Translations under genes and position numbers: made by a program
The notes under the pieces: generated by a model
The model's database searches: none
Seen by the model: only the letters and a program-made list of their open reading frames with translations
Told to the model about the DNA's origin: nothing
Shown here: in pieces, positions 1 through 54,687 of the stretch
Layout: each line of letters begins with the position of its first letter
Position numbering within the stretch: position 1 is the stretch's first letter
From: Chlorokybus atmophyticus
Taxonomy: Eukaryota; Plantae; Mesostigma and Chlorokybus algae
Assembly (NCBI GenBank): GCA_009103225.1
Contig: RHPI01001616.1
Span: forward strand, 18,778-82,777
DNA length: 64,000 nucleotides
Direction of reading: 5' to 3'

Positions 1-80
1 CGCGCGTGCGTGCTTGTGCGGGGGTGCGTGCGTGTGTACACAAGATGCAACGGGGATGTCATGCATGCAAGGCAACCATA

Positions 81-124
<44 letters not shown>

Positions 125-439
125 CACTCGTGTGTGAGCACGACTGTGCACGAACGCACACTCACGAGCGCGTGTGAGACTGTGCGTGATTGCCGTGCGC
201 ATGCACGTGCGTTGGCGCAGGTGTGGCCATGTGTGGGTGTATGGGCATATGGGTGTATGTAATGAGTGTGATGTGGTTAAGGGGTTAAGGGCCAAAGATT
301 CATCATGCGCATGCGCACACGTTCACGTATGTATATGTCTTTGTGTGCGAGCTTGCACATGTGCACGTGCGTGCGCTCCGTCACGCATGATCATGCACGA
401 TTGACTCAACCCCACACCGACTTCTCGTCTCCTCCCCAG

Positions 440-3400
440 GTGACAGTGCGTCTCTACGGTACAAAGGGCAGCTGCGCCCCGCGGGTGGTGTCCGGATCGA
501 GCAGGGCGAACGGTCGCGGCGGCGCGCTGGCGGTGAAGGCGATGATGAGCGGGGCGGGGGCTATCGTGTTCGAGCACTACGTGGAGGTGAGTGTGAGGGG
601 GGATGATGATGGGATGGGAAGAAACGAGCACACAGGCAGAATGCACACGTGCGCAGGGAGACGTGTGCCAGTGTGCATGTGATGTGCATGTACACAGGCA
701 ATCAAAGACGTGCGTGCGTGCGCACACATATGCACGCGTGTGCTTCATCTGATATTGAAACATATGCTTGCACTCCCTGCTCTGGCAAAGCTAATCAACA
801 CAGATGCATGCGTACGCTTACGGGCATAAGCACACACTCACACACGCATATACATGTTCAAACGCACACGTGTGTACACAGATACGCACACGCACACGCA
901 CATGCGTGCACACACACGCACGTGCAAACACGCGCACACATATGCACGCACTCACACGCACACATGCACGTGGGCCGTGCGCAAAACATCTGACAATACA
1001 AACACGCACTCACACATCTGCGCACGCACACACACACACACACACACTTCAACTCCACTAGGCAGAGGAGGAGCTCGGCGACCTCTGCGCCGTGGAGCTC
1101 CGTTACCACGCCATTCCTCAACCCAACACCTCTCCCACTCCACCCACAAACCCTCCCCTACCCACCCCAACTATAACCCCCTCCCCCTCCCACTGGCACG
1201 TCCTCAAGGTCCTCGTCACCCACACCGTCCACAACGGCCTCGCGTGCCGCATCCCAACAACACAGTATAGTGATGAGGAGCAGCTGAGGGACTATGCGCA
1301 CGGGGCGTGGGAGTTCCCGTGCCACGCGCACGTGGCGGAAGGGACCGCGAGGGTGTTCTTTGAGAGCGCGGGGACGCTGGCGCATAAGGTGAGGAGGGGG
1401 AGGGCAGGAGGGTGTCTTTGTTGTGTGTGTGAGAGATTGTCATACCTGATACACAATGACGAGGAGAGGGACATGATCCCCTGAGAATACAACACGTGCG
1501 TGTGCACATATACACAATCGCACGCAGAGGCACCAGAAGCACACACAAGCGCCCGCGCACACGCAGATGCACGTGCATGCGCATGCTCGCACACACATGC
1601 GCACGCGCATGCGCGCATGCACTTGCGAAGACGCGCACACTCATTTACGCGCACATATGAGCGCTCAAGTGCATAGCCACGCGCGCACACACTTTGCACC
1701 TGGCAACTACAACACATTTACTCCGCCTCCTTTGTGCGCCCAGGTCCCTCCTTGGGTCCAGCGCATGCGCGGTGAGGAGCTCCGCCTCGCACGCAAGACG
1801 TACCAATGGCGCAAGTTCCCGGGACTACCCACAGGCATAAAGGTAGTCCGATGAGATGTGTGTGTGTGTGTGTATGTGTGTTCTCATCATCATGTCATTG
1901 ATGTAGGCGGATAGGGTGAGGGACCTGCCCAGAGAGGAGTGGTATGGATGGGAGGGGGAGGGGGAGGTTGAAGACGCCGCAACAAGATATGCCGAAGCTA
2001 CAGTAAGAACAACCAGATGCAGTCTGTGTTTGATCATGATGCAACACACAGACGCATGCAGGCACGCACATGCGCAAGTGTGTCGGATCCACCCACACAC
2101 GCACGCGTGCGCGCAAGAACGCACAGAGGCGTCCGCACACATGTACAGGTGCATGTACGCACATGCACACACTGACTGCAGGGCCTCTCCTCATCCCCCG
2201 ATCAAGAATGGACCAGCCTAAGCGAGATCCGCGCCGCCCTCAAGAAGGCAAAAATCAAAGACCCCGAACCACCCAACACGTGAGCACACATCACCCCCCC
2301 ACCCCCACCCCCACCCCCACCCACCCAACCCAACCCAACACGACAGGTTCCTCTCCGACGCGTGGTTCGTGCGGCACGTGTTGAGTGGTTGTGTTGACCT
2401 CAAGCGTTGCCGAGAGGCGCCTGTCGGTTGGGTTGGGGGAAGTGGAGGTGGAGGCGAGGGTGGCGGTGTGGGTATGTTGTTGTTGGGTTCGCCAACGGGG
2501 GGCAGGGTGAAAGGGGGGAGCTTTAGAGTGAAGGAGGGGGAGGGGGAGAAGGGTGGGGGGAATGAGGAGGAGCAGAGGTTGGAGGAGCTGGTGAGGAAAG
2601 GAAGGCTGTTTGAGATTGACCTCAGGTGAGTAGCAGGAGGTTGCGTGTTTGTTGTGTCTGCGCGTGCATGTTCATGATGCGGTATGCAATTGTGTATAGG
2701 CGTGTGCTTGCGCGTGTCTAGGCAAGTGTCCGCACACGCGTGCACACATGTGTTGTTCCATGCAGTTCTCTTGTGCTGAGTGTGACCGCCAAGTCGCGCA
2801 CTTCTGACCTTCCTTAGTCGCACATACACGTCGGCGCATGGCGTTGCGCGCAATGCCGTGTGTGCGTGCGTGTGCGTACATGCGTAGTTGTGCTCGTGTC
2901 CCTGTGCGCATGCATGCATGGGTGTGGCTGTGTGTGAGTGGGTGCGTGAGTTGGTGCGTACGCATGCGAGGTGCGCGCGTGCTTTGCGTGTGTGCATGTG
3001 CATGTGTTCGCACATACATGGTTGCATGTGCGCGCGAGCGTATGTGTATACAGCATGTGTCTGCATACATGTGAACAAAAGGGGTATGCTGCTATGCCGG
3101 CGAGCGTGCGCGTATGCATACGAATGTCTGTCATGTACCCGCGGTTGCATGCGTATATGCAGGCGTGCATGCATGTATAACTGATGGCAGTCTGTGAGTA
3201 TAAGTTTTGCGTGTGCCCAGTCACCCTTGAAGTTGCTGTATGGATGCATGCATGCGTGCGTGGGTGGATATCTGCACATCCATGTGTGTGTGTGTGTGTA
3301 CAAGGAACGTCGACAGAATGTGTGTGTGTGTTCTGCGTACACGCTTTTCAAATGCGTGTATGTACGCATGATTGTGTGCGTGTTGATCCTCCCCTCCCCC

Positions 3401-5722
3401 CCAAGATGCATGGAGACGATGCAGCCCGGTCCCTCCTCTCCCTCCCGTCCCCCCGGCCGCCACACCGCCCCCGCGGCAGCCTGCCTGCTACGCGCCGATC
3501 GGCGGGGAGGCGGACTGACGCCGATCGCTGTCAGGTTGGATGCGAACGACTTGGGGGGGAGGGTGTATACGCCGCAGGACGAGAAGTGGTGAGCACACGC
3601 GCACACGCACAAACATAGCTATATCCCACATGACCCAATTGGAACACACACATGCGCACACATGCACGCGCACGCGCACGCAATCACCCTCCCCGCACAA
3701 GCACGCAGATGTGCGCACGCGCGCTCACACATACATCCCCCCCCCCCCTCTTAGGGCCTGGTGTACCGCCAAGTCGTACCTCCTCTCCTCCTCCTCCCAG
3801 CACCACCTCCTTGTCTCCCTGTACCTCAAGTCCCTCCTCGTCCTGGAGCCCTTCGCCGTGTCCTCCTCGCGCAACCTCAGCGGCGCGCACCCCGTGGGGA
3901 GGTTGATGAGGGCGTTGGGACCGGGCAGGGGAGTGATGGCGAGGTGCGTGGCAATGAGGGAGTGGGCGACCGCGAGGGGAGGGGAGGTTGAAGGAATTGT
4001 GGGGATTGGGGAAGAGAGCGTCACGGGTCTTGTGGTGCAGGTGCGTGCGTGTGTGCGTGCGTGTGCGTGTGCGTGTGAGTGAGTCCACGGCCATACCTAC
4101 AACTGTCTCCTCCTCTCCGTCCAGGAATATGCCGAGTGGGGTTTTTGGGACCTGTCTTTGCCCGAAGTCTTGTCTTCTCGCGGCCTGGTGGCCGATGCTT
4201 CCTCCGCTCCCGGCCGGCAGCATGTCCCGCTCGCAGACTACCCGTACCGCGACGATGGGATGCTGCTGTGGAACGCCATTCTCAGATTCGTGGAGGCGTA
4301 CCTCGGTAAGGGGAGCGGGTTTCATGCTGGTGCAAGTCAGGGCTTCAGGAGGAGCTAGCTTGTCACAGATGCGCACACACATGCATGCGCGCGCGCACGC
4401 ACACGCACGCAAGGTCACCTGTCTGATCCCATCACTGACTCCTTCACAGCGGTGTACTACAAGTCTTCCGAGGACTACGCCATGGACGCCGAGCTACAGA
4501 GTTGGTACTGGGAGGCTGCTGAGACGGGTCACAAGGGTCGTCCTTTCCCCACTGCACAAGACAACAACAAGGAAAAGGACAAGGACGACAAAGAGGACGG
4601 TGAGGATACCGTCACGATCAAGCCGAGGCAGGTGGCAGCGGCGTCACTCACGCGAAGGCTAGAAAGGAGAGGCAGCCTCACGGCTGCGCTCACGGACCCG
4701 GCCATGGCGGGGCTCGTGCTCACATCACTCATCTGGACGTCTACCTGCCAGGCGAGTGCGCGTTGGTGGGCGTGCGTTCGTACATGCGTATCTGCGTGCA
4801 CACATGTCTGAGCGGGCGTGCATGCGCGCTCTCGTGTGCGGTCGTGTGAGTCCACGCCCAGAGTGCGCAAGTTTGCATTTACGCATGCGCGCGTGCGTGG
4901 GTGCTCACGTGCGTGCATGTGCATGTGTGCGTGCGCGCATGTGCATGCGCGACAGCATCTGTCCATGTGTCTGCATGCACACGTGAGCGAGAGGTTATGA
5001 TGCGAGACAGTGAGCATGTGCGGATGCGTGCGGATGCGTGCGTTTGGATGCGTGCGTGCGTGCGTGTGCGTGTCTCCGCGTGTGCACACACACCCCTGGC
5101 TTGACACCCAACCTCCCTCGCATTTGACCTACCCTCCCTCTCCTTCTTGCAGTTTCCGGCATTGGGTCTCCACAGCCGCGACCACTTTGGCGCCTTCGCT
5201 TGGCGTCCGCTATCGATGCGTGTGCCGGCACCTACGGACAAAAGCGGTGTCTTTGATGAAAGAAGCTTCGTCGCCGCGCTGCCGGCGCCACATGAGGCTG
5301 CACGCGCCATTGGGATAGCATCGGTGCTGGGAGATATGGCTGCGCAGGTGATGCTGAGCTTTGACACGCGTGCACAGACGCAGATACAGACACGCACGCA
5401 CGCTTAATGCTCCGTGTCAAAACTGCACTTGTCATGCATGCACATCACATCGTATAGTTCCACCACTGCTCAATTCCAACATTGCCACCCCCAACCCAAC
5501 CAACTCCTCTCCCCCTCACTCCCCTCTCCTCTTCTCCAGTCCACCATCCTGGGTGCCCGTCTCCGTGACTCCTGGCTCTCCGACCCCCGCATCTCCACAC
5601 TATACGACCGACTGAGGGCGGACTTGCGCGCCGCCGCTGGGGAGATTGGAGGTCGCAATGCCGGACGGGCGACAGCATACTCGGGGATGGTGGCAGCGGT
5701 GGCGATCGATAAGGAGGCGTAG
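440..5722 (+). CDS. PLAT-domain lipoxygenase-fold protein, 5' end outside the window, all Fe ligands substituted (probable pseudo-lipoxygenase)
   Basis: About 12 exons splice in frame. Approximate spans and motifs: 440-586 (VTVRLYGTKGS), ~1061-1388 (EELGDLCAVEL...WHVLKVLV...FPCH, PLAT), 1744-1840 (EELRLARKTYQW..GLP), ~1907-2000, ~2181-2279, ~2348-2626 (SDAWFVRHVLSG...GRLFEIDL), ~3406-3588 (LTPIAVRL..VYTPQD), ~3755-4039 (WCTAKSY..EPFAVSSSRNLSGAHPV), ~4124-4305 (DYPYRDDGMLLWNAI), 4452-4751 (DAELQSW..LIWTS, GC donor), 5153-5348, and 5540-5722 (RNAGR..Y, stop). Confidence 0.9.
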
Positions 5723-6328
5723 AGGGTGTGCGCGCGCGTTTGAGTGTGTGGAAGGAGGGAGTGAAGCTATAAACTCTGTAGCAGAATTGGACCATAAAGC
5801 CAGCTCTTGGACGTGAGACAGTGTGATTGCACGCGTGCGCGCACATGCACACGATTGAATGCGCACACGCACGCAGAGTTTGATGGCGTGCTGTGGAACT
5901 CAAGCTGCGGCTGTGAAAGGTAGTGTCACGAGACCAGCATGAGTTGATGCTTTGAAACCCACTTGCAGCACGCAGAAGGCAAAAACACAAACACTGCCCG
6001 ACTTTCACTTTCCCAGCATTGCTTGCATGAGGTTCATGAACTTCACAGGACTCCATGACCCGTGCATTGTGGTGGAGGTTGGGTGTAAACAACACGCGAA
6101 TCATTATCAACCAATGCAGATACGAACTGAGTCCCAAGCCATCAATGCAGTGTGGCAACTGTATGGCAATGCACAAGGGTGGTTCAGAAGGGCAGGCTTC
6201 CCAATTGATGCCGAGCTTCCAATGTGGAATCGACCACCACATACACAATGTACCACAATCTCCTAGTGTCAACAGCTTTCTACGCTTTCTAAGACATACC
6301 AGCCAGATATCCATCTCGAGGTGGAGTG

Positions 6329-9190
6329 TTACTCGTCATTAAACTTGATCTTCTTGCCCTTCCCGCCCGCCGCCATCGCCTCCGCCAGCTTCCTCTTCGC
6401 TGCCCACGACGGGTGCAGTTCTTCTTCGCTCTCATTACGCTTATCTGGCATCGTCGGTGCCGATACGCCGGCCTGCGGCTTCCTTTGAACTGCCGCAGTG
6501 TTGGTTTTGGTGTTGTGTGTCTCCTGCTTCGTTGGATTGGGTGGGGCTGAAGCCACCGCGCGGCAAGGCGGCTGTACTGCCTTGGATGGCTGAGCTTGTA
6601 TGTGGCGAGCAGCTGGCCCATACTGCAACTCAGCAAGCCTGTATGGCAAGAACAATGATGTTATTCGTCATGCACGATCACAACTAATTGCAGACAAGAA
6701 TTGTTCCGGCCCAACATTGCATACCTTCGCCTGGCTCGCTGCCCGAGCCGCTTCTTGACCTTAGGCTTAACCTTGGGCTTGGCTTTGCTATCTCCTTTGG
6801 ACTTGCTGCCATTTGCTTCTGTATTCAAAGTCTTTGCAACTTGACCAGGCTCGCCCTCTTCTTGAGTAACATCACTACCTTCTTGTCCTTCCTCCTCATC
6901 GTCGTCGCTCCTCTCTAGAGTCAACTCATCCTCTCCATCTTCATCGTCTGATGAACCGCACATTGGGTAATCGATACCCTCTTCTTCATCAGACTCTGAA
7001 GCTGATGCTAATACAGAATCATCTTCACTCAACGTAGTGGGTTTCTGGTCTAGTCTGGTCTTTTTGCTCTTAGCTGCAAGCAGCTTGGACAGAGCTCGAG
7101 CTGAAGCCGCCTTTGTCTCAATATCAACATCATCCACAGCATTATCATGGGTTTGTTGTTTTGCCATTGTTCTGTGCGGCTGCTTGTTGGCCGTGACTGT
7201 TGTGTGGGTATGTGTACTGTTGGTCTTGCTGTGTGTATCAACCAACTGTTGGAGTAGCACGCGCACGCACTTCGCGCCAAGCAGCCGCGCAGCCGCGTCA
7301 TTGTCTTCTTTCGCTTGCGCCCGCGTGCTTGGCACAGATTCATCGTTGGTCGAGTCTGAAGCTGCGAGAGCACCTGTTTCACTCGCCAGCTGGCGCAAAC
7401 CAACCTTGTCGAGAGCCCTCGATACCAATGCAGTAAGATCAGCGGCCTGTTGAGGTAAAATAAATAACCACTACTTGGTCACAATATCAACTGCTGTTCT
7501 GAACAACATACAGTAAATGTGTTGCTAGTGCTGTAATGTATCACATGTACAATCATAGATATGGTACTATGACAGTGAGACAGTATGCTCATAGTGAACA
7601 ACAGTATGCTAACAGCATGATAGTATGATAGTATTCTTACCTTGATGGCGGCGACTTGGCGCTGGTACTTGTCCACCTCACTGGTGTCGGCACCCTCGTG
7701 CTTGGCGCGCTCGCCAGTCCACTTGCGGATGGCCTTGCGGAGCTCCAGCTGCTTGGCCTTCTTCAGGGTCTACGCAAGCACAGCGCATCACCATGTGTAA
7801 CGAGCACGTTGGCATCGGTTGTAGCATATAGTCCAATAAGCGATCAAAGAGCTTGTCAGCCGTAATACCAGCTACTCCTTCTGAGCTTTGTCCTCGCAAA
7901 GCGTGTCACATCTTACTGCATGCCATCCAAGCATTGCACACATGCTTGTGTGTGCCTAAAGAATGTCGCGAAACGCATGCAAACAAGAACAACTGTACAT
8001 GCCATACTGCGTTACACGGTCAGAATTCATCAAGGTACCTGTCTCAGTGTTCGCACGTCATGAAACAATCGCCGCTTCTGCGCCTCTCTCTTTAACTCCC
8101 CCAGTCGCCTCTCCTTTATCTCATCGCTCTCAACCAGAGTCTGTGCCGGTTGCTGGCTGTGGTTGAGCGCCTTGACGGCGGCTTGGCCCTTTGAGGCGCC
8201 GGCAGCGGGGACAGAAGGCTGAGTCGACTTGGCTTTCGTTAGACGTGCCTTCTTGCGACTGCAGGCAGAAAGATGAGTTATTGATTAGATGATCTGCCAA
8301 CAAAAAGTACATAACGAGTAACAAGACATGTAAAACGCAAAAGGACCAATAGGTCACATACAGACACGATTGCTATGTTATGGAATTTGTGCATTGGACG
8401 TCATCAATGAAGAGAATTTGGACAAGATAAAGATAACGATAATGCCAAAAGGGAAACAAAGTGTCACTTGTGGTAGTAGTAATGAATGGCTTCAAGAATG
8501 TCAATTAAGCAACCAGATGAAACTAAGCAACCTATCCACAGGCAATAGAAAACAAGAAAACAAAATGCCAGATTTTCATTCTGGGCGCTGCTTGCAGCAA
8601 ATTGATTGCAAGATAACACATTGCTCATTAATGCTGAGTATGTTCACAAGTTGATGCTGTCCAATGTGTGGCGGGACAGCATTAAAGCTAGTGCGAGTAA
8701 GAGTTTGCCAGCAAACGTTTGGTGTTACCTTAATGCTGGGGATCACCAGAAGAGGAATTTGAAAGACAAATCACAGAGCTTGGCATACAACAAAGAAGGT
8801 AGCAACAGCGTTACATACATACTCACACTTCATTACAAAAGACAGTCTAAGGGAAATCATAGGTAAACATAAGGTAAAGTCAGACTTGAATTCCGTATGC
8901 AAACAATTTGCTGAAAGTTTCACACTTGGAGTAGTGCAGAGAGACCAACACTGCAAACATGCATCAACTTTGATTGCCAGCAAAGTTGCAAAGCCTTGCA
9001 ATAAGCGAATTGGTCAAGTACTCTACAACAACACCATCAACGACAGCTGTAAAACTCACCTGCGCCACAGATCAAACTTGTGCTTGGGCCCCCGCCCCTC
9101 GGCCGCCTCAGCCCTGACCCTCCTCAGCTCCCGCCTGGGATCCACCTGCTTCTTCTTGGCGGCACCGACCTTCTTCACCTCCGGCGCCAT
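6329..9190 (-). CDS. BUD22: BUD22/SRFBP1-family ribosome biogenesis protein
   Basis: ATG at 9190 (MAPEVKKVG..). Exons at ~8040-8250, ~7640-7770 (TLKKAKQLELRKAIRK) and ~6724-7450 (acidic, KKRLGQRARR). Last exon 6329-~6637 encodes LAELQYG..ARH...LHPSWAAKRK...GKKIKFNDE, the hallmark Bud22 C-terminal motifs. Confidence 0.85.
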
Positions 9191-42490: not shown

Positions 42491-45400
42491 TCATGTAGTC
42501 AACTCCACAAGCGAGTCCATACTCATGGCGCCTGCAGGCGCTTCACCAACCACATCCAGCTGGATCGGCTTCGCTTGCAACACAGCACTTGTTGGCTCAT
42601 ACCCAGTCTGCTCATCTGCAATGCCGTTCACGAGTGCATGCAAAGCCTCCTCGACTGCATGTACTAGCATGTCATCTTCCGTGCCAACTTCTACAGCAGG
42701 CTCCAGCAATGAAGCATCTGACTCGTAGGGCACAGTCTGTTGTATGCTAACAAGTTCTGCAGGAAGTGCTAATTGTTGGAGTTGCGGTGCCTGGTCATGG
42801 CCTTCAAGCTCAGTGCCATCTGACTCATTGACAGCAACAGAAGAAGTATGCGCTGGTAGGGCAGCATCAGATGATGGGGATACCTCTTGCTCGGTCTCAG
42901 GCGCTTCGTATAGAGGTTGCAAAGGTGGTAGTGCAGTTGCGTCCTCAGCAACAACAGTGTCGTGCGTGTCATTGACGTGGGCTTGATCGGATAATGACGC
43001 CTCAGGTGCTGTCTCCTGTGCCATAGCCGCCTGCTCGGGTGCACCCACTCGGCGCGCGTCCTCAATCAGCGCGTTAAGCACTTCATCGGCAGCAGCTGCA
43101 TCATCAAGCGATGGCTCCTCATCTCTTGCATCTTCCGGCCTCATGTCCTCAGGTGCTGGCTCAGAGGCTTCTTCTTCAGTTGCAGGTCTGCTTGCATCTC
43201 CAGATGCGCCCTCGTGCTTGGAACCGGTGACTTTCCGAGCCAAGTGTTGTGGCACCTCAGGGAAGGAAGCCTCCGATGGCAGTGTCTCAGCCTCGATGGC
43301 ACTATCAGACTCCACCTCCGGTGCTGGCGTCTCAGTTTCAACCTTGGGTTCTGCGGTTGGTTCAGAATGGGTCTGACCAAGCTGAGACATGGTCTCAGCT
43401 TCAACCACAGGCGCAAGATCGGCTACTGGCTCAGCCATGGCCTCAGAAGCTGGCTGTGATTGGGTTGCAGGCTCAGCCTCAGGGTTTTCGGCCCCATCCT
43501 CAAGGGCTAGTGCGGGCCGGGACTCTACCACAACCTCTTCGGCTGCCACATCAGGCGCGGGCGCAGACAGGCTCTCAAACTCAGGTAGGGTCTCATGCTC
43601 CCGCTTGTTATCATCAGCTTGAGCAATGTCAGCCTTGGGCGTCTGGTATACAGTCTTGCGCGCATCCTTGAGCTCTGCATCCAATTCTGATGGGAACTGA
43701 GTTTCTTGCACAGGCTCCGTCTCAGCGCCCACCTCTGGGTCTGACACTGGATCGCGCTCAGACTCAGGCGGGTCAACAGCAGTTTCAAACGTAGGCCCCG
43801 TCTCCATGCCACCATCCGCATGCATTTCAACCTCAATGTCAAGATCATCCTCGTGCTCACTTTCCGGCTGTGGTTCCGCCTCAGATTGGGACTCAACCTG
43901 GTGCACAACTGTGACCTCTGAATGCGCATCCACCTTGGTCACCTGCTCACCAGCCTCAGCCGCAACGCTGGGCTGATCCTCCAACTCGGGTGTGCCATCG
44001 CCCTCAGGGTTGCGCGTGAGCTCCTCCTCACCCTCCACCTCTGCCTCCACCTCCACCTCTCTCTCTCCCTCGGCCTCAGCCTCTGTTTGGGACTCGCTTG
44101 CAAGCTTGGGTGACGCATCCTCCAGCAGGTTACGCTCGGGTTCCTTTGCACCGGCAGCCTCATCAGGCTCCGCCTCTACCCCAGGTTCAACTTCTGCTTC
44201 TGCTTCTGCCTGTGGATGAAGCTTTGAGTTGCTCAGAGGGTCCGGTGTCATGTCAACCTCAAGGTCAGCGTTAAGCTCCTTCCTTGCCGCGGGCTCCTCA
44301 GTCTCAAGCTCCCCATCGTCGTGCGCATTGGGCTCGGGCTCCTCAGCCTCCGCTGGGAATCCCGGCACAAGTTCTGGCGTGACCTCAGCGTTGGCAAACT
44401 CATCTGCTGGCCGAGTGTGCAAGTCCACCTCCCCCTCCACTTCAACCTGTGCTTCAACCTCTGCATCAAGCTGAACCTCGGGTTCCATCTCAACCGCATG
44501 CTCCGCCTCCACCATTGTCTCCATGTCGACCTCGCCAAGGTGATCCACCTCAGTCTCAGGCTGATGCTTCGGGTCCACCTCAGCCTCCATCTCTGCCTCT
44601 GCCTCGGGCGCAAGATTAAACTCAGGAGTGAATTGGGCTTCAAGGTGCTGTTCCTGCTCAAGCTCTACTTGCCCATCCCTGAGCTCAATTGGAGACTCAA
44701 CCTCAGGCTTGAGCTCAGCCTCAGGCTCAACCTCTGGCTCTTGCTCAAACTCAGGCTCTGGCTCGGACTCCACATCGTCAACAGCCTCAGCCTGGAGATT
44801 GATAACAGCCTCGTGCTCGAGTTGTGGCTTTGCCTCGGCCTCAGTGTCTGCAAACTCCGCATCCGCCATGTCGGGCTCGGGCGTTGTTGCCTCCGCCTGC
44901 TCCTCGGATGCGGGCTCAGCTTGTAGAACAGGGTCATAACCTGCATCAACCTCGGCCTCGGACTCAAGTTCTGTCTCAGGCTCAGGCTCCAGTTCCAAGT
45001 CCGCCAACATGGACTCTGGTTCGGACCCTGCCTCGGTCTCGGGCTCGGGCTCCACCTCAACCTCGGTTGTGACATCGGCCCCGCCCTCGAGTTGTGGCTG
45101 CACCTCGGCCTTAGCATTGAACTCAGCCTCTAAGTCCGCCTCAAACTCAGGCTCAGGCTGTGTTTGTAGCTCAGTCTCAGGCTCAGTCTCAGACTCAGCC
45201 TCATGCTGCTCCTCGAGCTCGGGTTCAAGCTGGGGATCAAGTGCCTCAACCTCAAGGTCGAGTGGTGTTTTTGATGCTGATGGTGACGGTGTCTGCTCCC
45301 TGTCTCGTTCAGAGTGCTCTGGCAGGTCCTCCTCATTGTCTTCTGCGTTCGTGTTTGCAGCCAAGTGAGCTTCAGGTGAGTCCACATCGCCTTCAACAGC

Positions 45401-48400
45401 TTTGGCAGGCAACTCACTCGCTGTCACAGGATGTGTTGGCGACGATGCTTCCAAGCCTGAGGTCAGGTGTTGAGACCTGTCATTCTCATCTTCTTCCTGC
45501 AGCTCGGAGTTAGGTTCCCCTTCCTCGGCCGCATCCGCATCCGCATCCGCATCCGCATCCGCATCCGCATCCGCATCCGCATCCGCATCCGCATCCGCTT
45601 GCGCTTGCGCTTCAGTGGCTAAAATAGAATTGGCTTTCTGTCGAGTGGCCTCTGCTTTGTAGCCCAAGTCTTCACCTTCCTCTTCCTCTTCCGCCCCTTC
45701 TTCTGCTTCACCTTCATCTTCTTCGTCTTCTGCCCATTCTTTTTCACCCTGTTCTCTCTCCGATTCAGCTTGCGCATCCGACTCTGCTATGTGCGGGTCC
45801 GCCAATACCGACATATCCTGCGAAGGGGCAAAGCCCTCGCTTTCCCTTCCATCATTCAAGTCTGTGGCTTCAATGCTCCCTGCAATGTCAGCTTCAAGCT
45901 GACTGTCCCCAAAGTCTTCCCCTTGTCTTTCTGATTTACTTCCAGCTTGTTCTGCGTCACCACCTTGATCTACGGCTTCAACAGGTGCTTCGGCTTCGGC
46001 TTCGGCTTCGGCTTCGGCTTCGGCTTCGGCTTCGGCTTCGGCTTCGGCTTTGGCCTTTGCTTCGGCTTCTATGCTTCCGCTGAGTGAAACTCTGTGTGTG
46101 TCTGTTTCCAGCTGAGCCGTTAAGATAGTGAAAGAGCCACCTTTGCTGCTGCTCGATCTACGCTGCTGCACATGTTGCATGCCGTTATTGGCATCACCAG
46201 CATCCTCATAGTCACGCGCAATATGGCCTGAGCCCTCGACCACATGTTGCGCAACAGCCAACAAGTGCTCGTCATGTTGGGACTGAACTGACAATGAGTT
46301 CCTTGCCTCCACAACCGTGCGCATGTGAACATCCTCCTCTCCCTCCTCCTTCTCCATGTTACGCTCAAAGGGTGTCGGCACTCTGTTGGCAACCTCGCAA
46401 TGCGAGTCAAAGTTAGGGTCTGGTCCTGGTTGAGTCCCGAGCTCCCGCTCTCGAGTGGGTTCGGGACGCTGCTTGCGTCTGGTCCTGGGACTAGGGTCGC
46501 CTGCAATCCTGACCCTGCGGGAGTCCTGGGGAGCATCCGGGACCGCGACGGGGATGGGATCAGAGGGGTGCTCCTGCACGACATGATACAGCCAAGTGTC
46601 AGCCAGCATAAACATAAGTACCTATGTATGTATCAGAGGTGTGCATCAGTACGTAGCACACGTGGACGTATGCGTGCGTGCACGCGCGCATGTGTGTACG
46701 CGTGTGCACACAAGCGCGTGCGTGTGTGCTTGTGCACGGTAATCTGTCCTACGATGCAGTAAGTGGTAATATGGACCCGATTGCGTACATTCTTGGCAGT
46801 AAGGTCGATTCGTGTTGGGGCCTTCAGAACCCTACACACAAAGACATGCGTAAGTACATGTAAATACCCCAGCCACTTTGCAAAACTATGCAACTTTACA
46901 CAACAACAACCCAACATACTTGTTCTCTGTGCCCTTCCCCTCGCGTTCCAGTGTCCTTTTAGCCGCTCTGACTCTCAGCGCATCAGCAGGTCCCAGCTGC
47001 AGCCCTGGCGCGAGACTCTGCTGTCCCAGCAACAGGTCCTGGGACCGGCCGAGGCCCCGCGTGTGGGACCAAAGCTGGGACTGAGAGTGGAGATGGGACT
47101 GTGGTTGGGTGAGGAGGGATGATGTGGTTGGGACTGAAGGCGTGAAGAAAGGGTCGAAAGGAGGTGTTGAGTTGAGGGCGAAAGCCGCCACTATTGCAGT
47201 GTTCTGTGAAGACAACAGGAGTTAACACGTCAGCAACAGCCAGCGGGTGCAACAGTGTGATGTGCGTGCGTGCGCGTGCGTGCATGCGTGTGTGTGTAAG
47301 TGCGCGCTCGCGTGTATCTGCGTGTACATGTCTAAAATGATCATGTATCGTACCTCGTAGATGAAGGCAATATCGTTGCCCATCCGTAGCAGACAGTTCT
47401 CGCCGTCATAAACAAACTCCCGCTGGCGTCCCATCTGTTTCTGCTCACACAGCAACAAGCAGTCAGTCAATTGCGTCACTCATACCACAATATATATGCA
47501 ACTGTTTGTTGGATTCACCCTTACCCTCCAACCCGTGACGGCTTCCACCACTTGCAAGGTGGCCTCCACCGCTGTCAGCAACAACGCCTTGGTCTCTGCT
47601 TTGACACTAGGATCCCTACAAGGCAGTTCGGGTAAATGTAAATGTGCATGCATGCGTGCACCCATGTGCGTACACGCGTACATGCACACGCACACGCACG
47701 CACACTGATGTGCATGCATGCACACGCAGGTGTGGGTAGGTGCGTGCAGGCGCGCGCACATACACACACACACAACTGCATATCAATTAACATCGCACCA
47801 GCTTACATGTCATCTGAGGGTGGAATCGAGCTCGCGTGCAACCGTAGCTTGTCCACCACGGCATCACGCATCCTTACGGCCTTCACCACCTGCATCTCCC
47901 TGTCGACGTCCTTCACAACAGGCCCCACGGGCACTTTACGTCTGCAAACACACATGAGTTGGTTCAATTCCACAGTAATGATAATACTCGAGCACAAAAA
48001 ACAATGTAGTGTGCTTACGTGCGAGTGACAACTTCGGCCTTTTTATCCTCTTCTTGTGTGTGCTTCTCACTGCTCCTCTCTACACTGGTCCTGGACCCAG
48101 CCCTAAAGCTGCCACTCATGTCCCTGGGTGAGCTCTCGCTCAGCGGGTCCCTCTCAGCCTCATGATTCCGGTCCCGAACCCGCTCCTGCTCCAGATCCCT
48201 ACTGACCCTTTTCTCATATTTCTTCATCAGCCTCTCTGCCTTCTCTATCACGGCCTTCGGGTCCTTTACACTTGAGTCTCGAATCCCTCTCATGTCCTTC
48301 AAGTCCTTTGAGTCTTTTATTCTAATCCTTTGCTCCTGCTGATTGTAATGAGCCCTAAGGTCCTCTTTGCTAGGAGGGTCCCGGGTTACTTTTCTAATGT

Positions 48401-52775: not shown

Positions 52776-54687
52776 ATGGCGGGGCCGGTTGTCGACGCGG
52801 CGTACTTGAAGGTGAGCACCGCGCTGTGCCTGGGGCTGTTGTCGAATTTGCCATGCTTAGTAGGGTTCTGGAGGAAAGTGGCGTGGATTCGGGGTGGCGT
52901 GGTGTGCGGGACTGGTGTGAAGCGGTGATGTCTTGGCGAAATCTGTACTGAGTGTGATTATGGATGAGTGTCGTAGCACGCGTGCAGCCGCTGCTACGAC
53001 AGTTCGCTGTTGACGGTGAAAGCATGTTGGGGCTACCCTATGCATGTGGCACAGACATCGCATAGCACACACCTGGTGTTCAATTGTGATTGGATGAGAT
53101 TCGCGCTCGTTCGGATTTGGACACCAGCTATGTCATGCTGCGGTCAACCTACCATGTGCGTTTTTGCTCTTGTCATCATTGTTACACACTTTGTAAGCCT
53201 TCAGCCGACGTCAGTTTACACTTGCCGCAATTGACCAAAGATTCAGTTATGTACCTTATTGTCTTATCACACAGAGCATAGAAAATGCAAGGCGCGATAT
53301 TCGTGCTCTCATCGTCAACAAGCAATGCGCTCCCATTCTCGTGCGGCTCGCTTGGCATGATGCCGGCACTTTTGATGTCCGATCCAAGACGGGCGGACCC
53401 AATGGCTCCATCCGTAACGAAAAGGTACGCCAAATGCATAGCGACAACATCTGACAGTCATGAAGCGCAAACAATCACTGTTGACAATTACAGCCCTGTT
53501 TTACACCAACATATTGCTTGGTACCTGAGACTCTCGTCTATGCACAAAGCAAACTTTCTGTGTACAAGTGTGTTTTGGCTTAACGCAAGCTTGAAGCAAG
53601 CATGTCTGTTGCAGGAGCTCGCGCACGCAGCAAACCGCGGCTTGCACATAGCTGTGCAGCTGCTGGAGCCGATCAAAGCAAAGTATCCCAACTTGACGTA
53701 CGCGGATCTCTATCAGCTCGGGGGTGTAGTTGCAGTTGAGGCCACTGGCGGTCCCACTGTTGATTACGTGCCAGGCCGTAGAGACTCCAAGGTTGATTGT
53801 TGGTACAAAACACTTATTGACAGGATGCAGTGCATGGAGTGTCGTCTAATTTCAGCTCTCTTTGCGGCTTGTCTTGGCAGGTGTCACCACCAGAGGGTCG
53901 ACTTCCAGATGCGAAGAAGGGTCCAATGCACCTTCGGGATGTGTTTGGAACCATGGGCTTGTCCGATAGGGATATCGTTGCACTTTCGGGTGCCCACACT
54001 TTGGTACGTGTGTGCTGTATGGTCATTTACGTGGCATTGCAGGCACGGTAGCTGACTTGAATTGTGGATCGATAGGGCCGAGCGCACAAGGATCGCTCTG
54101 ATTTTGAAGGCCCTTGGACTCCGGAGCCCTTGAAGTTTGACAACTCTTACTTTAAGTGCGTGGGTGTCATTCTTGTCAGCCGGTTTTTGGTATGATGAAC
54201 AGTGCGTGCAGTGTGTTGACTTGTTTCATGGCTGCATTGTTCAACAGGGAACTTCTGAGAGGCAACCGAGCGGATTTGCTCAAGCTGCCATCGGATCTAT
54301 GCTTGCTGGAAGACCCAATTTTCAGGCCGCTTGTGGAGCTTTATGCTGCGGTACCCTGCCAGTCTGTGCTGATTGCATATGTGTGATACTACCCTTGCTA
54401 ATTGAGGATGTTTAATGAGCTTGTCGTGGCAGGATGAGGAGGCCTTCTTTAGGGATTATGCGGCAGCGCACAAGCGCTTATCAGAATTGGGCTGCACTCT
54501 GCCAAAGAACGTCCACACGACGCCAACCGGCACCTCTATGGACGGCTCTATGCTTTCTCTCAACAATCCCGACACGGTGATCCTCGTCCAGGCCGGCTTT
54601 GGCATTGCCGTCGCTGTTGGCGTGGCCGTCCTCGCGTATACGTATGAGACAAGGCGGCGTTTGAAGAGTCTTGTCAAGAAAGCTTGA
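52776..54687 (+). CDS. APX3: Peroxisomal membrane-bound ascorbate peroxidase
   Basis: [12 protein letters not shown]|[97 protein letters not shown]-terminal TM helix followed by a basic tail (YETRRRLK). Confidence 0.96.

Follow-up and report, generated by a model that had tools for sequence, protein, structure and literature searches.

Can a gene of the lipoxygenase (LOX) family be kept once the residues that hold its catalytic iron are gone? This question is raised by a LOX-like gene on the plus strand (positions 440-5722) of a 64,000-nucleotide stretch of Chlorokybus atmophyticus DNA (GenBank assembly GCA_009103225.1, contig RHPI01001616.1, positions 18,778 to 82,777), here called the window. 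A preliminary description, made from the letters of the DNA, had presented the gene as a maintained non-catalytic LOX. Our analysis, which combined a revised gene model with family alignments, database scans and phylogenetic trees, points to an old, selectively maintained, iron-site-deficient family of LOX-fold pseudoenzymes that includes this gene, a reading that we regard as probable rather than secure.

Gene model and splicing

Coding-looking blocks were found by reading window positions 1-6600 and translating the three forward frames; they alternate with TG/CA-rich low-complexity sequence. Joined at AG/GT boundaries, these blocks initially gave 11 exons and 759 stop-free codons. An extra exon (1907-2002) was identified by a low-stringency tblastn search, in which ADRVRDLPREE (1907-1939) was matched to ASRLEDLPRDE of the Tetraselmis protein P0003 (E = 0.001). 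This exon has an AG acceptor and a GTAAGA donor, is in phase 0 on both sides and keeps the frame, and once it is included the E value of the match between the N-terminal part and P0003 improves from 3.7e-8 to 1.8e-11. The resulting 12-exon model encodes 791 codons in a single open frame closed by a TAG codon at 5720-5722, and its 11 introns comprise ten GT-AG introns and one GC-AG intron. The first exon in the window opens at an acceptor and the sequence upstream of it is intron-like, so the 5' end of the gene lies outside the window, cut off by its edge; judged against P0003, the N-terminus lacks about 46 residues. The claim of the preliminary description that the exons join in frame without stops therefore stands, now with one more exon. 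The strings on which it relied are also in place: H427 to F443 (HLLVSLYLKSLLVLEPF) at 3804-3854, IWTSTCQ and FPALGLHS on the two sides of the 4751/5153 junction, and AVAIDKEA directly before the stop codon.

The GC-AG junction of intron 10 was analyzed against all in-frame combinations of GT or GC donors at 4700-4830 with AG acceptors at 5090-5230. Canonical proteins have 24 residues from a conserved Trp to a conserved Pro, as does the model that uses the GC-AG junction, and among the in-frame pairs 4752-5152 alone yields this spacing, the others adding or deleting residues. The possibility that alternative splicing restores an HAAxN motif, raised in the preliminary description, found no counterpart in this computation: of the 17 alternatives that keep the frame at intron 10, not one puts H-x3-N/H where the ligand motif belongs. 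A hidden exon within intron 10 encoding HAAVN was likewise considered and rejected, since all three frames there consist of low-complexity Cys/Val/Ala/Arg strings.

The introns of this gene (e.g., 600-1060, 2640-3400 and 4760-5100) are mostly made of low-complexity sequence that is rich in TG/CA and resembles GCGTGC. Its translation gives Cys/Val/Ala/Arg strings, which draw spurious protein matches (P0002 and the C-terminus of P0011).

Family membership and domain layout

Searches with single exons placed the gene in the LOX family. Exon 8 (33.5 bits, E = 2.3e-8) and exon 9 (38.5 bits, E = 7e-10) match the Pfam family PF00305 above its cut-off of 23.6 bits, and exon 10 scores 17 bits, under this cut-off. 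The PDB matches found by phmmer are all lipoxygenases: exon 8 matches coral 11R-LOX at E = 4e-7 and soybean LOXs at E of about 1e-5, and exon 9 reaches E = 4e-8. The structural motifs WxxAK, EPF, HP, DYPYRDDG, ELQxW and RN, said earlier to survive in this gene, are all seen in the spliced protein. The window gene is a LOX-family homologue with an intact frame.

The earlier proposal of a PLAT membrane domain at the N-terminus fared less well. The N-terminal exons, searched as single exons, gave no Pfam PLAT match, and the N-terminal domain carries two inserts. Comparison of the N-terminal alignment with amphioxus PLAT domains by hhalign (probability 55%, E = 1e-4) covers the last strands alone (W-V-x-V ... 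FPC). An AlphaFold2 model of the nearest relative, P0003 (mean predicted local distance difference test score 68, built from 15 input sequences), places nine strands within residues 26-159, ahead of a disordered linker that leads to a helical domain. In Foldseek, this model can be superposed on 5-LOX, 15-LOX-2 and coral LOXs in their full length, with some 760 aligned columns (E of about 1e-34), which is consistent with a beta domain followed by a LOX domain. A PLAT-like N-terminal domain is thus likely in the window protein, if weakly indicated.

The iron-ligand positions

His499, His504, His690 and Asn694 of soybean LOX-1 are what we take to be the four side-chain iron-ligand positions of the family, numbered here 1 to 4. 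When exon 8 was aligned with LOXs of the PDB (soybean LOX-3, seed LOX and coral 11R-LOX), both His positions of the helix were occupied by Leu. The soybean LOX-1 match to this exon spans chain residues 479-529, and in the soybean seed LOX alignment LLVSLYLKSLLVLEPF of exon 8 stands opposite QLVSHWLNTHAVMEPF. The ungapped alignment of exon 11 with coral 8R-LOX sets ALGL opposite AVNF, with Phe667 at the His position and Gly671 at the Asn position. Two independent multiple alignments that include rice, Chara, bacterial and amphioxus LOXs also gave L, L, F and G for the window protein versus H, H, H and N. The replacement of all four iron-ligand side chains, as claimed in the preliminary description, is hence borne out by PDB and family alignments alike.

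It should be noted that the top phmmer match of exon 11 sets HSRDH (5171-5185) against the ligand motif HSSNH of pig 12-LOX. This alignment was rejected because it needs a compensating gap of six residues, whereas the family spacing fits the ungapped alignment exactly.

The C-terminal residue of the window protein is Ala791 and not Ile. Past the RN motif, the tail has 22 residues, one fewer than the 23 of the relatives and of the coral enzyme, and we therefore read it as a tail of near-canonical length that ends in Ala, rather than as an Ile with a four-residue extension. The notion of a terminal "Ile followed by DKEA" in the preliminary description is accordingly doubtful.

An iron or manganese site of this family is composed of three His, one Asn or His and the carboxylate of a C-terminal Ile; the window protein has Leu432, Leu437, Phe667, Gly671 and Ala791 at these places. 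As read from the sequence, the canonical non-haem iron site is unable to form. With Leu, Leu, Phe and Gly in place of the ligands, the metal site may be filled by hydrophobic side chains, as the preliminary description proposed. In known lipoxygenases, dioxygenation proceeds by hydrogen abstraction at the Fe(II)/Fe(III) site. With His, His, His and Asn all replaced, the sequence predicts, on the established knowledge of the family, neither hydrogen abstraction nor dioxygenation of the canonical kind.

Relatives of the window protein and their ligand sets

Relatives were sought by scanning 1.84 billion representative proteins exhaustively with exon 8 (HMMER); only 16 matches were obtained at E values up to 0.001. 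The nearest full-length relative is Tetraselmis striata TSEL_013272 (P0003), and a JGI protein (P0017) is 77% identical to it. Other relatives include CAG9463833 of Pedinophyceae sp. YPF-701 (P0014), proteins from ENA, JGI and Logan assemblies (P0001, P0005, P0007 and P0016) and amphioxus allene-oxide-synthase-lipoxygenase-like (AOS-LOX-like) proteins. Scanning metagenomes contributed marine loci that lack introns (L004-L009; GC content 0.60-0.72), and few further members came from word-indexed protein searches in which P0003, P0001 or an alignment served as query. The P0001 group is represented by clusters of 46 and 79 member sequences. A Chara braunii match (P0054) was rejected as a member of the clade, being a canonical LOX. 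Identity of the window protein to any other aligned member is 30% or less.

Maximum-likelihood trees (LG+C20+F+G4) were built from 17 and from 24 rows. The window protein groups with the Tetraselmis, Pedinophyceae and marine proteins in both, with support of 94/94 (17 rows) and 91/94 (24 rows), values below the "starred" level. This clade stands apart from the canonical LOXs of Oryza and Chara and from the amphioxus proteins (each of these two groups with 100/98), as well as from the bacterial proteins. Ligands 1 and 4 are gone in all of the 14 clade rows, the window protein included, and ligands 2 and 3 are kept sporadically (Table 1). Across the clade, there is no conserved substitute set of metal-binding residues at any position. 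The simplest reading of these alignments would be that the metal site was lost once, long ago, and that the leftover ligand positions, by then without use, went on to drift. These proteins thus form a green-algal clade of iron-site-deficient LOX homologues, of which the window gene is a very divergent member, and we find it fairly probable that the clade is old and has been maintained in the way proposed below.

Table 1. Residues at the four side-chain iron-ligand positions
Protein	1	2	3	4
Window gene	L	L	F	G
P0001, L007, L009	L	F	R	M
L008	L	Y	R	L
L004	L	H	V	R
P0007	L	I	Q	L
L005	L	V	Q	L
P0003	L	Y	H	S
P0017	L	Y	H	A
P0005	F	H	H	R
P0014	W	V	H	T
P0016	W	V	S	L
Canonical LOXs	H	H	H	N

Two side observations concern individual relatives. 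The P0016 cluster contains eight members of 2291-2303 amino acids, encoded on JGI/ENA metagenome contigs of 10-16 kb. Its single Pfam match is the ligand-less LOX domain at residues ~750-1080, the other ~1900 residues being unannotated; its sister, the Pedinophyceae protein P0014 (1430 amino acids), likewise has long unannotated parts. The proteins P0003, P0017 and P0005 start with MGGGLS or MGAGAS, which fits the N-myristoylation consensus and would suit a membrane-associated role.

Selection and expression among the relatives

The ratio of nonsynonymous to synonymous substitution rates (dN/dS) was calculated by the Nei-Gojobori method for pairs of marine members, giving 0.15 for L007/L009 (90% identical), 0.13 for L007/L008 and 0.14 for L009/L008. 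Marine members without any of the four ligands are clearly under purifying selection. As for expression, P0017 is encoded without interruption on a 2.8-kb contig (L001) and on a Logan contig (L002), and the same gene is multi-exon on a genomic contig (L003), the three being nearly identical (1 nucleotide difference). Since L001 is intron-free while the L003 locus is multi-exon, L001 represents a spliced transcript, indicating that the Tetraselmis-like gene is expressed.

Maintenance of the iron-site-deficient clade after ligand loss is thus supported indirectly as far as the window gene is concerned, the evidence of selection and expression coming from its relatives. Of the maintained non-catalytic LOX put forward in the preliminary description, the non-catalytic part is supported as far as the canonical site goes, which is impossible, and the maintained part is reached through relatives, namely the shared loss of ligands 1 and 4 in two or more named lineages of green algae (Tetraselmis and a pedinophyte) and in uncultured marine forms, and the low dN/dS of a marine subgroup.

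Proposed mechanism and alternative explanations

We propose that the gene, of which all but the 5' end lies in the window, would encode a two-domain LOX-fold protein with an N-terminal beta domain and a helical domain of the catalytic type. The ancestor of the clade would have lost ligands 1 and 4, positions 2 and 3 would then have been lost piecemeal, and the fold would have stayed under purifying selection after ligand loss. The protein may be made in this alga and may act without dioxygenase chemistry. The beta domain of active lipoxygenases binds membranes. Taking this together with the conserved fold and the hydrophobic channel, a non-catalytic binding role is favoured; its likeliest mode would be the binding of membranes or of polyunsaturated lipids or oxylipins through the retained beta domain and the channel, so that the protein could be a pseudoenzyme with a binding, sensing, carrier or scaffolding role. 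The regulation of active LOXs, also suggested in the preliminary description, would be a further candidate function.

The same gene could instead be a silent or recently inactivated relic from a ligand-deficient clade, in which stops and frameshifts have not yet accumulated. Several observations favour such a relic and weigh against a maintained pseudoenzyme: no RNA run is listed for this stretch in the sequencing-run search, the searched protein libraries do not contain the protein, no other terminal branch of the tree is as long as its own (1.6 changes per site), its amino-acid composition is deviant, and it contains several low-complexity inserts. Moreover, it shares seven of the 16 clade-specific conserved columns and lacks two of the three invariant charged ones, a count that local misalignment may affect. 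The proposed family is weakened further by the way in which the clade was sampled, as the query used to collect relatives has none of the ligand His itself, and by the library of 1.84 billion representatives, in which neither the protein itself nor a close orthologue is present (top identity of ~46% in the exon 8 scan). The outcome for orthologues in related algae, a matter raised in the preliminary description, is accordingly divided: related algae do share the ligand loss at positions 1 and 4, and no close orthologue was found. In addition, lipid or oxylipin binding by the window protein is conjectural. What argues against a relic is the state of the gene. All 791 codons are open and all of the 22 splice-site dinucleotides are intact, where a neutral branch of such length would be expected to bear disabling lesions. 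The periodicity of GC content over codon positions is kept (GC3 > GC1 > GC2, the numbers standing for the codon position), with GC3 at 0.75 versus an intron GC of 0.56, and the protein retains 73% of the family-conserved columns (64-95% in other members). On this balance we regard a relic as unlikely, though to be taken seriously.

Two further accounts would return the protein to catalysis. The product could still be an enzyme, with a relocated or different metal site (e.g., His673 and His677) or with metal-free chemistry on lipid hydroperoxides. Both His residues lie one and a half to two and a half turns past the lost ligands, within the HSRDH string that phmmer can place on the pig 12-LOX motif, one or two His are kept in some clade members, and the fold and the channel-lining motifs are retained. 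Apart from the gap which that placement requires, His673 and His677 are conserved in no relative, the clade is without a conserved replacement set of metal-binding residues, and ligands 1 and 2 are Leu under either alignment; we consider an enzyme of this kind quite improbable. It could also be argued that the gene model is an artefact and that the true mRNA, with other exons, encodes a normal lipoxygenase, taking into account that the model is computational, that exon 1907-2002 was absent from its first version and that the donor of intron 10 is a non-canonical GC. However, Leu432 and Leu437 are internal to exon 8, flanked by WxxAK on one side and EPF on the other, and no choice of splice sites alters them. 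Intron 10 frames hold low-complexity strings only, no in-frame junction restores a ligand motif, and relatives can be aligned along the whole of the model with no segments missing, which makes an artefact hardly credible. The maintained, iron-site-deficient pseudoenzyme is therefore the explanation that we carry forward.

Comparison with known systems

Canonical iron LOXs (soybean LOX-1, 1YGE/1F8N; coral 8R-LOX, 3FG1; human 5-LOX, 3O8Y) share with the window gene the PF00305 domain, found on three of its exons, the same order of motifs from WxxAK to RN and the same spacing around both ligand helices; their two-domain layout is likewise found in the model of P0003. They differ from the window protein in the ligand set (Leu, Leu, Phe and Gly in the latter), in the C-terminus, where the window protein has Ala and a tail one residue shorter, and in the large low-complexity inserts that it carries.

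The ligand-deficient green-algal proteins (P0003 and P0014, together with P0001, P0007 and L004-L009 from marine metagenomes or metatranscriptomes) form one clade with the window protein, have lost positions 1 and 4 and are of similar length with an N-terminal beta domain; a Leu-Tyr-Leu at the first ligand helix is common to them and the window protein. Several of them keep His at position 2 or 3, whereas the window protein has lost all four ligands.

Degenerate ligands are also found in the amphioxus (Branchiostoma) AOS-LOX-like paralogues P0008 (N, Q, Y, N) and P0010 (L, H, N, T), which occur beside the intact P0011 (H, H, H, N). Unlike the window protein, these belong to the separate animal clade (100/98) and are fused to a catalase-type domain. 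Ligand loss in amphioxus is independent of that in the window gene.

Among protists, TgLOXL1 of Toxoplasma gondii is a lipoxygenase-like protein that was studied for its biological role, with no classical product demonstrated (PMC10653942). It is likened to the window protein by description alone, as it is treated as an enzyme with a catalytic core, and no statement on missing iron ligands was found in that paper (PMC10653942). Like the TgLOXL1 paper, the paper on LiLOX of Lobosphaera deals with presumed or proven enzymes. Our literature searches (lipoxygenase pseudoenzymes, inactive or lipoxygenase-like proteins with iron and PLAT, and green-algal LOXs) found no description of ligand-less lipoxygenase homologues.

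Wider meaning

It is the iron site that defines lipoxygenases; a conserved, selected and expressed clade without this site would mean a second, non-oxygenase use of the fold. It is conceivable, although we lean against it, that an ancient iron-free family of LOX-fold pseudoenzymes has been kept for hundreds of millions of years in both green lineages, the chlorophytes and (with this alga) the streptophytes, where its members would bind lipids or oxylipins as regulators or sensors. If true, this would be a new functional class inside a heavily studied enzyme family, and algal oxylipin research would gain a definite candidate for a partner that binds lipids or has a regulatory part. When "lipoxygenase genes" are counted in the genomes of algae and amphioxus, the totals take in proteins that are predicted to be unable to act as oxygenases. 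The result of note is the surrounding clade as well as this gene, and the Tetraselmis or marine members may suit study better than this very divergent copy.

Features of the gene and its neighbourhood

The features of the gene are listed in Table 2.

Table 2. Coordinates (window positions) of exons, ligand-position codons and intron 10 of the LOX-like gene
Feature	Position	Strand	Remarks
Exon 1 in the window	440..586	+	49 codons; N-terminal beta domain; aligns from residue ~47 of P0003
Exon 2	1062..1388	+	N-terminal beta (PLAT-like, likely) domain; Pro/Thr-rich insert; W..V.V ... FPC motif
Exon 3	1744..1842	+	VPPWVQ...TGIK
Exon 4 (added)	1907..2002	+	32 codons; phase 0/0; DLPREE motif
Exon 5	2182..2279	+	
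Exon 6	2347..2625	+	Catalytic-domain homology begins; Gly/Glu-rich insert
Exon 7	3406..3588	+	
Exon 8	3755..4040	+	WxxAK; helix bearing ligands 1 and 2 in active enzymes; EPF; HP; PF00305, E = 2.3e-8
Leu432 codon CTG	3819..3821	+	Position of iron ligand 1, His (soybean LOX-1 His499)
Leu437 codon CTC	3834..3836	+	Position of iron ligand 2, His (soybean His504)
Exon 9	4125..4305	+	DYPYRDDG; PF00305, E = 7e-10; PDB, E = 4e-8
Exon 10	4450..4751	+	ELQSW; acidic/basic insert; ...LIWTSTCQ
Intron 10	4752..5152	+	Sole GC-AG intron; donor GCGAGT at 4752
Exon 11	5153..5347	+	Helix bearing ligands 3 and 4 in active enzymes
Phe667 codon TTT	5153..5155	+	Position of iron ligand 3, His (soybean His690)
Gly671 codon GGT	5165..5167	+	Position of iron ligand 4, Asn/His (soybean Asn694)
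Exon 12	5540..5722	+	RN; C-terminal tail; ends in Ala791, then TAG

Ten long open reading frames (ORFs) elsewhere in the window were compared with Pfam, which gave one peroxidase match only and no informative neighbour. On the minus strand, an uninterrupted ORF of 1374 codons with an ATG start (42491-46615) has no Pfam match at E = 0.001 and no identical entry in the gene collection. The peroxidase match is to the plus-strand ORF at 53285-54055, whose residues 109-170 match the haem peroxidase family PF00141 (E = 3.5e-12), and this ORF is probably one exon of a plant-type peroxidase gene. A (TG)n microsatellite is located at 85-122. Finally, coding-looking sequence on the minus strand at ~6330-7430 converges on the 3' end of the LOX-like gene; it includes an ORF of 255 codons (6661-7428) with no Pfam match, and probably corresponds to the last exon or exons of a neighbouring gene.

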